A stretch of DNA of 64,000 nt from Macrostomum lignano (Eukaryota). Position numbers and translations under genes: made by a program. This document shows positions 36,101 through 39,100 of this stretch, in pieces; the first letter of the stretch is position 1; every line of letters starts with the position of its first letter. The notes below the pieces were generated by a model, which saw only the letters and a list, made by a program, of their open reading frames with translations, ran no database searches and was not told where the DNA came from. The stretch is from the NCBI GenBank assembly GCA_002269645.1, contig NIVC01001668.1, positions 62,001 to 126,000 on the forward strand, in the 5' to 3' direction.

Positions 36101-39100
36101 ATGAAAGCTAAAATAAGCCGCTAACTTTTAAGGCATATGATTTTTTCGACACACATTAATATATATATACTTGTGGAAGCAAGCAAAAGTGACACTACTT
36201 CTGGGACACCCCTCGTAGTCCTTGCTTTTCAAAAAGAAAAAAAACTTGTTTAAATGTTTTTTTCATTTTCAAAAAGACCTTCTGCATAAAATCCTATGCT
36301 AGATTTTAGGTAAAGAATCTTCCACAGCATTATTCAAGGCTGTCATGCAATGCAGGCTGCCAGCACAGTAACAGGTAAAAATGCAGGCTGCATTCAATCA
36401 GCACGCACGTAAAAATAATCCAGTCCCATCACCTCGGCATTCATTGGTGTTAAAAAAAATCAATGAGGCAGATTGAAAGAGATGGTAAAGACTGAACGAG
36501 TTTTATGATGACGGAAGCTTTCTGATGTGTGTCTGGTTTTCATAATTGTTCATAAACTTTTTCAAACGTATTGGGTAGACTTAAGTTTTCTGAAATATTT
36601 TTTAATATTCCTAGTTTTCTAAAAAGAAAGGGCGATATCAGATCAAGGGCGCCCCTGGTGCTAAAGCCTCTGGTGCTAAAGCCCCTGGTGCTGGCGCCCC
36701 TGGTGCTAAAGCCTCTGGTGCTAAAGACCCTGGTGCCAAAGCCTCTGGTGCTAAAGCCCCTGGTGCTGGCGCCCCTGGTGCTAAAGCCTCTGGTGCTAAA
36801 GTCCCTGGTGCTGGCGCCCCTGGTGCTGGCGAATAAAATGACTCTCAACTTCCAAAGATGCGCCACGCCAAATGGAAAATCCTGGCTACGCCCCAGACTC
36901 GATAGACGTGAAAGATCTAAACTGGTTCAGAAGTAAGAGCGAGAAGAAAAAGAATGAAAACAGGGAATGAAAGCTCAAGGGGGTAGAGGAGTTTTGGCTC
37001 TAAGAGGATGAAAGCGTGCTAACGGGGGAGGTGAATTCTCCGGCAAAAAGCGGTGGGATGATGCCTGGGAGACTCAATCTCCCTGCAATCGGCGCCTCCC
37101 CTTACCAAGAAGGAGCAGATGATGTAGAATGAGATAAAATAGGGATATCCGACTAGCTGCTGGCAGCTGGGCTCCTCAGTCTGCCCGCTATGGTTGTGAG
37201 TCTTCCACTCGATGTACGGGTCGCTGTGGTGGTCGCACTTGGCCTCGGCTGCATTGCGTTTGTTGAGGACAACGGGAGGGGGCGGGGGGCAAAGAGCGAG
37301 TGAGTATTGATCTGTTCTGAGACTCTGGACACTCACCAGGAATGAGCACAGCATGTAGAAGCTGATAAAGTACGGGTAGGCTATGGAGCTGCCGCACGAC
37401 TCCATTGATTGCGGACTGACTGAGTGCTTCTGCTGCTGCTGCTGCTGCTGCTGCTGCTGTCGAAGATTGTTGCCACCCGGCGAGGACAAATCGCATTTCA
37501 CCTTTTGAGGATCTGCATAAAAGTACACTGCATTAGATTCTCTTCCCTATGAAAATCGTGCAAACACTACTAAATGATTGATGCTGCTGGAAATTGAAAA
37601 AATTAACTTTCTTAAGATTTTATCATAGTACTACTAATAGTAATTTGGCACAATCTCTGAAGTATCCGGGAACAGAATGTGTCACAGTTGGTAACGCAGG
37701 CACAATAGCAATTATTTAGATAAACAGCCGCACCATTCACGCAGGCGAGCAGAATCTCCTGCCAAGCCTCTCCGGTAGCCGACCGGAACAGCACCAGCGA
37801 GGCGGAGAAGAAGGTGCGAAAGTTATTGTTCCGGTTGATGTGCGTCTCAGCGTCCAGCCGGATTTTGCCGAACATCTGCATCCCGATGACGGCGTAGATG
37901 AAGAACAGCATCAGGATTAGCAGGGCGACGTAGGGCAAAGCCTGGAGAGCCGGTGAGCAGTTGTGATGTGCTAGCATATCGACTAGAAAACAACATGGAC
38001 TCAACCGCAGGGACATCAAGGCATTATCCGTGGCCCTCTAAGGTTATGGCTGCTCCGCTAGGCATCGCTTACCTACAGGAGAATCCGTAGCGAGCAATGA
38101 TGAGAACGCGGAGCAGTTCATCTGGCTGGGAATTCCCCGCGTTTACTCAGGACAGGCTAATGGGACAGGAGCTTCATTTTTGCCCTGATGAAGAATTTCG
38201 TATTCGAAATATCGGCAACTTCTTAGCTTTTTTTGTTTGTCTTGTTGCTTTGCTATGTTGGCGCCCTCGGGATTGGAGGCTCTCCCTCTCTCTCCCCTCT
38301 CTCTCTTTCTCTCTCTCTCTTTCTCTCTCTCCCTCTCTCTCTCTCTCTCTCTCTCTCTCTCTCTCTCTCTCTCTCTCTCTCTCTCTCTCTCTCCTCTCTC
38401 TCTCTTTCTCTCTCTCTCTTTCTCTCTCTCTCCCTCTCTCTCCCTCTCTCTCTCTTTCTCTCTCTCTCTTTCTCTCTCTTTCTCTCTCTCTCTTTCTCTC
38501 TCTCTTTCTCTCTCTCCCTCTCTCTCTCTTTCTCTCTCTCTCCCCTCTCTCTCCCTCTCTCTCTCTCTTTCTCTCTCTCTTTCTCTCTCTCTCCCCTCTC
38601 TCTCCCTCTCTCTCTCTTTCTCTCTCTCTCTCTTTCTCTCTCTCTCCCCTCTCTCTCCCTCTCTCTCTCTCCCTCTCTCTCCCTCTCTCTCTCTTTCTCT
38701 CTCTCTTTCTCTCTCTCCCCTCTCTCTCCCTCTCTCTCTCTTTCTCTCTCTCTCTCTCTCTCTCTCTCTCTCTCTCTCTCTCTCTCTCTCTCTCTCTCTC
38801 CCCTCTCTCTTTCTCTCTCTCTCTTTCTCTCTCTCTCTTTCTCTCTCTCTTTCTCTCTCTCTCTCTCTCTCTCTCTCTCTCTCTCTCTCTCTCTCTCCCT
38901 CTCTCTCTCTCTCTCTCTCTCTCTTTCTCTCTCTCTCTTTCTCTCTCTCTTTCTCTCTCTCTTTCTCTCTCTCTCTCTCTTCTCTCTCTCTCTCTCTCTC
39001 TCTCTTTCTCTCTCTCTCCCCTCTCTCTCTTTCTCTCTCTCTCTCTCTCTCTCTCTCTCTCTCTCTCTCTCTCTCTCTCTCTCTCTCTCTCTCTTTCTCT

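Follow-up and report, generated by a model that had tools for sequence, protein, structure and literature searches.

A probable tandem pair of mutually exclusive exons in the domain IV pore region of a Cav1 calcium channel gene of Macrostomum lignano

In vertebrate L-type calcium channels mutually exclusive exons are a major cause of diversity in function and pharmacology, and the domain IV pore loop and IVS6 segment line the pore and help bind dihydropyridines, phenylalkylamines and benzothiazepines. Two similar exons, which we call X and Y, lie side by side in this region of a calcium channel gene within a 64,000-nucleotide stretch of the Macrostomum lignano genome (contig NIVC01001668.1, positions 62,001 to 126,000 of the forward strand; hereafter the window). 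The question raised by this locus is whether X and Y are alternatives and, if so, how the choice between them is enforced and what it changes in the channel. A preliminary description of the same DNA had proposed that steric constraints on splicing force the choice and yield two channels with different outer vestibules and different pharmacology. It had also placed the vertebrate Cav1.2 pairs elsewhere in the protein, which is indeed the case: the mutually exclusive exons of mammalian Cav1.2 are 8/8a (IS6), 21/22 (IIIS2) and 31/32 (IVS3), and IVS6 is constitutive (PMC3596553). A literature search returned no paper describing mutually exclusive exons at IVS6 or in the domain IV loop for any Cav1 gene, nor one on the splicing of a flatworm Cav1 gene.

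X and Y belong to a Cav1 alpha-1 gene of M. lignano and are encoded on the minus strand. The earlier guess that this was a flatworm Cav1 gene was confirmed by UniRef A0A1I8H277 (P0095, Macrostomum lignano), which maps across the window exon by exon; it differs in frame from a second model, P0124, only in a short stretch of the IVS3-S4 linker. The pore motifs TMEGW, TGEDW, TFEGW and TGEAW (an EEEE selectivity filter) are all found in window exons, as are an AID-type motif in the I-II linker and a C-terminal IQ region, and the Pfam domains precomputed for homologues are Ion_trans, GPHH and Ca_chan_IQ. The top matches among solved structures are Cav1.2, Cav1.1 and Cav1.3 (E = 1e-65 to 1e-117), with Cav2 structures (1e-55 to 1e-81) and Cav3 structures ranking behind them, and the best named homologues are of the 'muscle calcium channel alpha-1 / Ca-alpha1D' type. 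The four-domain architecture and the closer match to Cav1 than to Cav2 or Cav3 indicate that the predicted protein is a member of the Cav1 (L-type) family.

The features of the X/Y region are collected in Table 1. The Glu that domain IV contributes to the selectivity filter (in TGEAW) sits in the upstream constitutive exon, which ends in ACVN plus a single base (the G at 37734) before the donor G/gtgcgg, so that the following exon starts in phase 1. Within the next intron the motif CTAAT, about 21 nt before the X acceptor, resembles a branch point. Exon X is bordered by tttatgcag/AT CCT CAA and TTC CTG/gtgagt; its product starts with a split Asp codon and comprises a long P2-S6 loop of domain IV, which includes a Q10 tract, and then the outer part of IVS6 (20 residues), in which Met occupies its place in the Cav1.2 Tyr-Met pair. 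Exon Y is bordered by caatgcag/CC GAG GCC and TTC TTG/gtaagg and encodes, after a split Ala codon, 47 residues, among them a compact acidic loop (26 residues) followed by 19 residues in which Ile-Ile replaces the Met-Leu of X. The 88-nt intron between the two exons runs from gtgagt to tgcag and has exactly the length given in the preliminary description. The downstream constitutive exon contributes 42 residues and a split Lys codon. Alignment to human Cav1.2 places the alternative segment in the P2-to-S6 loop and the outer two-thirds of IVS6, in agreement with the region that had been proposed to be swapped. A tandem repeat lies at about 36700-36830, inside the long intron downstream of Y.

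Table 1. Features of the X/Y region, in window coordinates
Feature	Position	Strand	Content or basis
Upstream constitutive exon	37734..37941	-	IVS5 and pore loop; models P0123, P0124, P0095 and sequence
Intron upstream of exon X, 221 nt	37513..37733	-	sequence read
Exon X, 176 nt, phase 1 to 0	37337..37512	-	sequence
(CAG)10 microsatellite in exon X, Q10 of extracellular loop	37430..37459	-	sequence
X-Y intron, 88 nt	37249..37336	-	sequence
TACTCAC, branch-point candidate	37300..37306	-	sequence and fold
C/T-rich tract, 35 nt, from branch candidate to Y acceptor	37265..37299	-	intron sequence
Exon Y, 143 nt, phase 1 to 0	37106..37248	-	sequence and public models P0095, P0123
Intron downstream of Y, 3477 nt	33629..37105	-	sequence
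Downstream constitutive exon, phase 0 start	33502..33628	-	inner IVS6 and proximal C-terminus

That X and Y are paralogous, as had been suggested, is clear from their local BLOSUM62 alignment score of 92, far above that of 1000 shuffles (21.6 +/- 4.1, maximum 46). In the S6 portion 12 of 14 residues are identical, and the codons there carry six synonymous-only differences (one of them AGC versus TCA for Ser) against two non-synonymous ones. The two loop cysteines align between X and Y and are invariant across all copies compared; they probably correspond to domain IV cysteines 4-3 and 4-6 of the published numbering (PMC4436565). Because so many S6 residues are shared despite the synonymous changes, the duplication appears to be old with both copies constrained. 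Together with the retention of the pair in a paralogue about 71% identical (see below), this shows that X and Y have both been under long-term purifying selection.

The reading frame permits only one arrangement. The lengths of both exons are 2 mod 3 and each takes one base from the upstream exon, entering in phase 1 and leaving in phase 0. The earlier claim that including both would break the frame holds: when X is joined to Y (319 nt), translation ends early at a stop codon 31 codons into Y. With neither exon the frame is shifted as well, and with X alone or Y alone reading continues through the downstream exon. By this arithmetic the inclusion of one and only one of the two exons is the sole productive outcome. 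The 88-nt intron itself is 1 mod 3 and free of in-frame stops, and the frame is kept if it is retained.

Taken together we regard X and Y as, quite probably, mutually exclusive exons that arose by tandem duplication in an L-type-like Cav1 alpha-1 gene of M. lignano. Each mRNA would carry exactly one of the two, and both would be spliced into messengers, presumably in different cells or at different stages. At the least, exclusivity would rest on the incompatible frames, mis-spliced RNA being removed by nonsense-mediated decay, and the very short intron between X and Y may help. The two isoforms would differ in the domain IV P2-S6 extracellular loop and in two outer IVS6 residues, Met-Leu in X and Ile-Ile in Y. 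We expect the outer vestibule loop, long, fast-evolving and Q-rich in X and compact and acidic in Y, to be the main functional difference.

The preliminary description had suggested a search for the pair in other flatworm Cav1 genes. The pair was found again in a paralogue of M. lignano; flatworm matches from other species were of the Cav2 type only. This paralogue (P0129; P0360, which is UniRef A0A1I8FGX9) is about 71% identical overall and carries the same X-then-Y order. Its exon structure was read from mispredicted proteins (P0129 and P0360), from which both the X-type and the Y-type exon of this older paralogue appear open and splice-competent, with a spacing of about 52 nt estimated from the read-through translation of P0360. 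The Y loop is well kept between the two M. lignano genes (CD.xSDxY[IV][ED]WxxHN..EEPxCQQL[VI]G) and retains a CD..SD.Y motif that recurs in numerous other Cav1 proteins. The X loop varies strongly between the paralogues. We also considered the motif IAYPYF as a marker of X-type exons and rejected it, as it is widespread.

Two further tandem arrangements came from other data. Logan contig L001 (run DRR639055) carries a similar pair of 137 and 119 nt, both phase 1 to 0, around a 58-nt intron. Clean orthology of this pair to X and Y was rejected as unproven: window exon Y is nearest to the first L001 exon (38/42 nucleotides and the closest loop motif), not to the second, and between L001 and the window the Met/Ile position tracks exon order. 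In the nemertean Lineus longissimus (L007) a duplicate homologous exon is present at 69402-69576 and 70271-70487, and the copies alternate, being used in 3 and 10 of the 13 full-length RefSeq isoforms listed (of isoforms X1-X25). As with X and Y, these are two tandem copies in a Cav1 gene, both of a length (1 mod 3) that makes them frame-incompatible together, and the isoform difference falls in the outer loop of domain IV. In contrast to X and Y, the Lineus exon begins earlier, with (R)SATGEAWQ, so that it includes the selectivity-filter Glu (its end reads FISFYILCSFL), and its copies lie 694 nt apart with identical S6 residues; X and Y are 88 nt apart and their S6 residues differ. Alternative domain IV pore exons thus occur, in annotated isoforms, in a second spiralian Cav1 gene. 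Tubulanus polymorphus has a single copy and so do five further metazoan contigs, and in the listed isoform sets of six mollusc and two insect groups this exon did not vary within a species. Because Tubulanus, also a nemertean, is without the pair, the Lineus duplication is independent of the flatworm one, and on these comparisons the X/Y pair itself is lineage-specific.

Under the steric proposal, the branch point used for Y lies too near the X donor for a spliceosome to form across the X-Y intron and joining of X to Y is impossible; the gene architecture itself would then impose exclusivity, independent of the decay of mis-spliced RNA. Exons 2 and 3 of alpha-tropomyosin represent this steric-hindrance type of mutually exclusive splicing: the upstream donor is close to a distant branch point, and a long pyrimidine tract comes after it. 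With its candidate branch point the 88-nt intron would have that layout. Its best yUnAy motif is TACTCAC, whose candidate branch A (37301) lies 36 nt from the X donor (matching the earlier description of a CTCAC motif about 36 nt away) and 52 nt from the Y acceptor, and the ensuing C/T-rich tract is AG-free up to the acceptor. The spacing is short at three of three such loci (88 nt here, 58 nt in L001 and, by inference, about 52 nt in the paralogue), and a second mutually exclusive pair in the same gene, at the position equivalent to 21/22, has its copies about 2 kb apart, which makes the short spacing specific to X and Y. The shorter spacings at the two other loci are suggestive for the steric model, not proof. 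Against it, and unlike the tropomyosin case, introns of similar length are spliced normally in this very gene: constitutive introns of 77, 77, 93 and 96 nt make 88 nt an ordinary length, so that sterically enforced splicing is doubtful on length alone. The M. lignano branch point is a candidate called by motif match, and since the other short introns of the gene are without clean yUnAy motifs such calls are unreliable in this species. The motif is also the exact reverse complement of GTGAGTA, a consensus donor, and in the predicted fold it is base-paired to the donor of X. Furthermore, the Lineus copies seem to be mutually exclusive in annotation at 694 nt, which makes short spacing unnecessary, and both short-spacing relatives were found as read-through ORFs, a route biased to short, open introns. 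A literature search found no published figure for minimum intron size in M. lignano. We therefore consider steric hindrance possible rather than probable. Convincing docking-site/selector RNA pairs of the Dscam type were not found around X and Y; the only two inverted repeats nearby are weak (17 nt at 82% between the exons, and 11 nt between exon Y and the intron downstream of it), and the local fold is no better than that of shuffled sequence (z = -0.36), a value that also leaves the donor pairing of TACTCAC without significance.

Dihydropyridines contact L-type channels at a Thr and a Gln in IIIS5 and at the Tyr-Met pair of IVS6 (Tyr1463/Met1464 in Cav1.2), and in Cav1.1 we take Q939 to be such a contact in IIIS5. 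In the M. lignano gene the IIIS5 Thr is kept and the residue aligned to Q939 (ungapped alignment) is Glu; in IVS6 both exons retain the Tyr, and the Met is retained in X, with Ile in Y. Among 365 proteins the commonest motifs carry V (137), M (45, the vertebrate YMLCAFL) or I (33) at the Met position, and among invertebrate Cav1 channels this position varies naturally between V, I and M. Because the Met position varies in this way and the Q939 equivalent is Glu, dihydropyridine sensitivity is uncertain for either isoform, and the different pharmacology that had been proposed for the two is doubtful. A difference in drug binding is accordingly the less likely candidate, compared with the loop, for the main effect of the X/Y switch.

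An alternative to a working pair is that Y alone is in real use, X being a relic or a very rare duplicate and the position effectively constitutive. Both public models of the gene, P0095 and P0123, take exon Y, and protein searches (queries of 174, 1452 and 475 aa) gave no Macrostomum product containing exon X of this gene; these word-indexed searches reached proteins of about 100-2500 aa (about 0.58-1.75 times the query length). The high variability of the X loop between paralogues and its CAG microsatellite would also fit a rarely used exon. However, X has AG/GT splice sites, an open frame, a length of the right class, both cysteines and a fully canonical S6 start, and its synonymous sites are heavily diverged from those of Y. 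An X-type exon is moreover intact in the paralogue of about 71% identity, a divergence over which a neutral 176-nt relic would have lost its open frame or its splice sites, and an X-like exon is used by the model of another M. lignano paralogue, P0121. We consider use of Y alone quite unlikely. Least probable by far is an artefact, either mis-assembly of paralogous or haplotypic copies in a highly duplicated genome or a single long exon made up of X, intron and Y, for although redundancy and many repeats mark the M. lignano assembly (PMC5730564) and X, intron and Y are open and in frame, the predicted protein P0360 running straight through them, X and Y are identical at only 31 of 42 S6 nucleotides and have different loops and are thus not collapsed alleles, the arrangement recurs in a second M. 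lignano gene and in an independent contig from another data set, and two consecutive half-S6 segments are incompatible with the Cav fold of the matched solved structures.

A mutually exclusive X/Y pair, the reading we prefer, has close parallels among known channels. Like X and Y, the Cav1.2 (CACNA1C) pairs of vertebrates belong to a Cav1 alpha-1 gene and consist of tandem duplicates, only one of which enters each mRNA; 8/8a also exchanges an S6 segment and alters dihydropyridine sensitivity (PMC3596553), and 21/22 has its equivalent in the M. lignano gene; the X/Y pair differs in covering the domain IV P2-S6 loop and outer IVS6. Exons 12a/12b of Lymnaea LCav3 and 15a/15b of NALCN are mutually exclusive exons that swap an extracellular, cysteine-containing pore turret or the selectivity filter and change ion selectivity (PMC4436565). 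They too lie in the pore region of a four-domain channel, but in other channel families, in domain II and on the S5-P side, and the X and Y isoforms have identical selectivity-filter residues, as judged from sequence.

A stronger reading of the locus would combine these elements: a hard-wired steric choice between X and Y, with introns of only about 52-88 nt kept at three loci, giving two functionally different Cav1 channels and recurring in Spiralia. We hold this combination to be rather doubtful. If it were true, the isoforms would differ in permeation, gating or toxin and drug access, through the outer vestibule of domain IV and the fenestration face between III and IV; the pair would be to Cav1 what the 12a/12b turret switch is to Cav3, with repeated origin in Spiralia (Macrostomum, the L001 organism and Lineus). 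More modestly, the M. lignano pair and its independent nemertean parallel suggest that isoform diversification in Spiralia has repeatedly targeted the outer vestibule of domain IV.

In a genetically tractable flatworm, for which transgenesis is available (PMC5730564), X and Y offer a natural chimera pair for probing the function of the loop. Cav channels of flatworms are under discussion as targets for anthelmintics, and isoform-specific pore faces would be relevant there if parasites have the pair. In the public gene models for M. lignano Cav1 both mutually exclusive sites are incorrect, which matters for cloning or knock-down of these channels.

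The gene that carries exons X and Y is a large multi-exon gene on the minus strand, which begins at 63999 or beyond with the domain I pore and reaches the C-terminal tail near 25000. A 275-residue Macrostomum lignano protein, P0095 (UniRef A0A1I8H277), matches its exons from IVS1 to Y one by one, and two longer models flagged as window-encoded, P0123 and P0124, both map onto the gene. Each of its four pore motifs (TMEGW, TGEDW, TFEGW and TGEAW) contains Glu, and it also has an AID-type motif in the I-II linker and an IQ motif; among named proteins it is closest to those of the invertebrate "muscle calcium channel alpha-1 / Ca-alpha1D" type, and among solved structures Cav1.2, Cav1.1 and Cav1.3 rank best, above Cav2 and Cav3. 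Judged by these similarities it is a flatworm Cav1 gene, and the same assignment in the preliminary description is borne out.

Because the upstream exon ends with one extra G, X and Y both begin in phase 1, with GAT (Asp) or GCC (Ala), and both exit in phase 0 ahead of the exon beginning at 33628. The intron between them is exactly 88 nt (37336-37249). Its CTCAC motif lies within the heptamer TACTCAC, with the A at +36, and is followed by a 35-nt C/T tract containing no AG until the Y acceptor. Thus the preliminary description was right to report two paralogous phase 1 to 0 exons separated by 88 nt, with CTCAC about 36 nt from the upstream donor. The two peptides are far more alike than expected by chance: they align locally with a score of 92, and 1000 shuffles gave 21.6 ± 4.1 and never exceeded 46. 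In alignment with human Cav1.2, X and Y each supply the extracellular loop that follows pore helix P2, together with outer IVS6 as far as ...FYMLC(A/S)FL; the inner part of IVS6 (IINLF...) is encoded in the next, constitutive exon.

Features of the window gene and of comparable exon pairs
Feature	Location	Strand	Length	Remarks
Upstream exon	37941-37734	minus		ends with one extra G
Exon X	37512-37337	minus	176 nt	preceded by tttatgcag, followed by gtgagt
Exon Y	37248-37106	minus	143 nt	preceded by caatgcag, followed by gtaagg
Second mutually exclusive pair	54846-54740 and 52732-52626	minus	107 nt each	homologous; 2 mod 3
L001 (Logan contig) first exon	813-949		137 nt	donor gtgagt; phase 1 to 0
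L001 second exon	1008-1126		119 nt	donor gtgaga; phase 1 to 0
Lineus longissimus tandem exons	L007 (OU342998.1) 69402-69576 and 70271-70487		175 nt and 217 nt	both 1 mod 3; 694 nt apart
Repeat-rich stretches	38150-39500, 56700-57150, 58650-60750, 1-700 and others (window)

X and Y are incompatible in frame. The reading frame is intact with X alone or Y alone, but joining the two (319 nt) shifts the frame, as had been proposed for double inclusion, and leads to a stop 31 codons into Y; skipping both also causes a frameshift. A transcript that retained X, intron and Y (407 nt) would stay open and in frame, but with a second half-S6 that is at odds with the channel fold. By this arithmetic, exactly one exon per mRNA is the only sensible productive outcome. 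The X-Y intron, its counterpart on L001 (950-1007) and that of the paralogue model P0360 (UniRef A0A1I8FGX9) are all 1 mod 3 without an in-frame stop, such that retention would be in frame at all three loci. Two of these loci came to light as read-through ORFs, so the shared pattern may reflect ascertainment.

Four lines of comparative evidence (codons, cysteines, a paralogue and predictor errors) indicate that X and Y are both functional copies. First, over the 14 codons of the S6 segment the two share 12 residues, and 6 of these 12 shared codons differ synonymously, including AGC versus TCA for Ser; such divergence beneath shared residues points to an old duplication with both copies held by selection. 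Second, both loop cysteines are invariant across every copy examined, and they appear to be cysteines 4-3 and 4-6, the conserved domain IV loop cysteines of a review of four-domain channels (PMC4436565). Third, M. lignano has another Cav1 gene, with an overall identity of about 71%, in which an X-type exon is likewise followed by a Y-type exon: model P0129 concatenates the two exon peptides and P0360 reads through the short intron that separates them. Comparison of the two genes shows good conservation of the Y-type loop but not of the X-type loop. Fourth, at X/Y the models take both exons (P0129), neither (P0122), an X-like exon (the paralogue P0121) or Y (P0095 and P0123), and these gene-predictor errors match what a mutually exclusive cluster would cause. 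Protein searches at three query lengths found no product containing exon X of the window gene. Each of the public M. lignano Cav1 models P0121, P0122, P0123, P0129 and P0360 is mispredicted at one or both of the mutually exclusive sites: the errors are inclusion of both exons, omission of both, or translation through the intron. A short stretch of the IVS3-S4 linker (QPSRSASS) is read by P0095 and P0123 in another frame than by P0124.

We consider it possible, though on balance doubtful, that steric hindrance within the 88-nt intron keeps X and Y from being joined. The X donor, 36 nt, TACTCAC, the pyrimidine tract and the first AG do follow one another in that order, and spacing is short at all three such loci: 88 nt at X/Y, 58 nt on L001 and, judging from the 17 read-through codons of P0360, about 52 nt in the paralogue. 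However, the same gene splices constitutive introns of 77, 77, 93 and 96 nt, which themselves lack clean branch-point motifs; the two short-spacing relatives were found as read-through ORFs, an ascertainment bias; and the pair in the nemertean Lineus appears mutually exclusive with copies 694 nt apart. The candidate branch point TACTCAC (37300-37306, minus strand) is the exact reverse complement of a consensus donor, GTGAGTA, and the predicted minimum-energy fold places it in a 9-bp stem with the X donor (37328-37337, minus strand). This fold was no better than that of shuffled sequence, and a search for docking/selector-type complementarity at the locus found none.

Exon Y alone, used as the query of an exhaustive phmmer search, gave six matches, one of them P0360. 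Another, P0361, is a read-through ORF on Logan contig DRR639055_7511 (L001; run DRR639055, 1.9 kb, 40% G+C), where two exons of the same design as X/Y flank a 58-nt intron. The other four, on contigs L002-L006, are single copies fused to the pore exon without an intron after ACVN. The Met/Ile residue in the L001 pair tracks exon order; orthology with X/Y is nonetheless ambiguous, because window Y is nearest the first L001 exon (38/42 nt and the CD..SD.Y loop motif). When isoform sets from one nemertean, six mollusc groups and two insect groups were screened, only Lineus longissimus varied within a gene at this exon, and the mollusc and insect sets showed no such variation. In Lineus, by automated RefSeq annotation only, the tandem copies are used alternatively, the IMLGCAAREDSAKCD variant in 10 and the IMLACTNRPQVYCDF variant in 3 of the 13 full-length isoforms listed; their S6 residues are identical and their loops different. 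Unlike X and Y, the Lineus exons begin earlier, at (R)SATGEAWQ, and the palaeonemertean Tubulanus polymorphus (L008) has one copy of the exon; the nemertean duplication is therefore independent of the flatworm one. On this comparison Spiralia have at least two separate duplications of the domain IV pore/S6 exon into an alternative pair, a recurrence that is new.

The largest difference between X and Y is in their loops. That of X is long, Q10-containing and fast-evolving; that of Y is compact and acidic and keeps the CD..SD.Y motif, as in many other Cav1 sequences. S6 differs only by Met-Leu (X) versus Ile-Ile (Y), with SSIA versus QLVG just ahead of the helix. A (CAG)10 microsatellite at 37430-37459 (minus strand), likely polymorphic in length, places ten glutamines within the extracellular pore loop, an unusual site for polyQ.

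The IVS6 Tyr-Met pair has a part in dihydropyridine binding. At the Met position, the commonest motifs among the 365 proteins retrieved by then had Val (YVLCSFL, 137), Met (the vertebrate YMLCAFL, 45) and Ile (YILCSFL, 33). In IIIS5, at about 51850 (minus strand), an ungapped alignment places Glu opposite Cav1.1 Q939, which we take to be a dihydropyridine-contacting Gln, and the Thr four residues earlier is kept. This variation and the Glu at Q939 make dihydropyridine sensitivity uncertain for both isoforms. They also weaken the step in the preliminary description to different pharmacology. Dihydropyridines bind IIIS5, IIIS6 and IVS6, and of the sites only IS6 is alternatively spliced in mammals (PMC3596553). 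By analogy with the 12a/12b turret switch of Cav3, an effect at the outer vestibule (on permeation, gating, or toxin or subunit contacts) would be the more likely role of the X/Y switch.

Full-text literature searches turned up neither a Cav1 gene described as having a mutually exclusive pair at the domain IV loop/IVS6 site nor any account of flatworm Cav1 splicing. Mutually exclusive exons are known in Cav1 genes; the X/Y position is new and structurally central, and the architecture and conservation of the pair are solid. A second pair in the same gene, with copies about 2 kb apart, encodes the end of IIIS2 and IIIS3 and corresponds in position to exons 21/22 of vertebrate Cav1.2. P0122, P0123 and P0124 wrongly join parts of both its exons.

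An open frame of 445 aa (45089-46423) lies in the 7.3-kb intron that separates the IIIS6 exon from the IVS1 exon, on the same (minus) strand as the channel gene. It has an EGF-like domain match (E = 3e-06) and a weak laminin-G match, and could represent a nested gene or exon. The introns are dense in long microsatellites and short tandem repeats, for example (GA)n and (CTGT)n-like arrays, and these repeats strongly skew GC and AT composition locally (by −0.63 at 38-40 kb, for instance).
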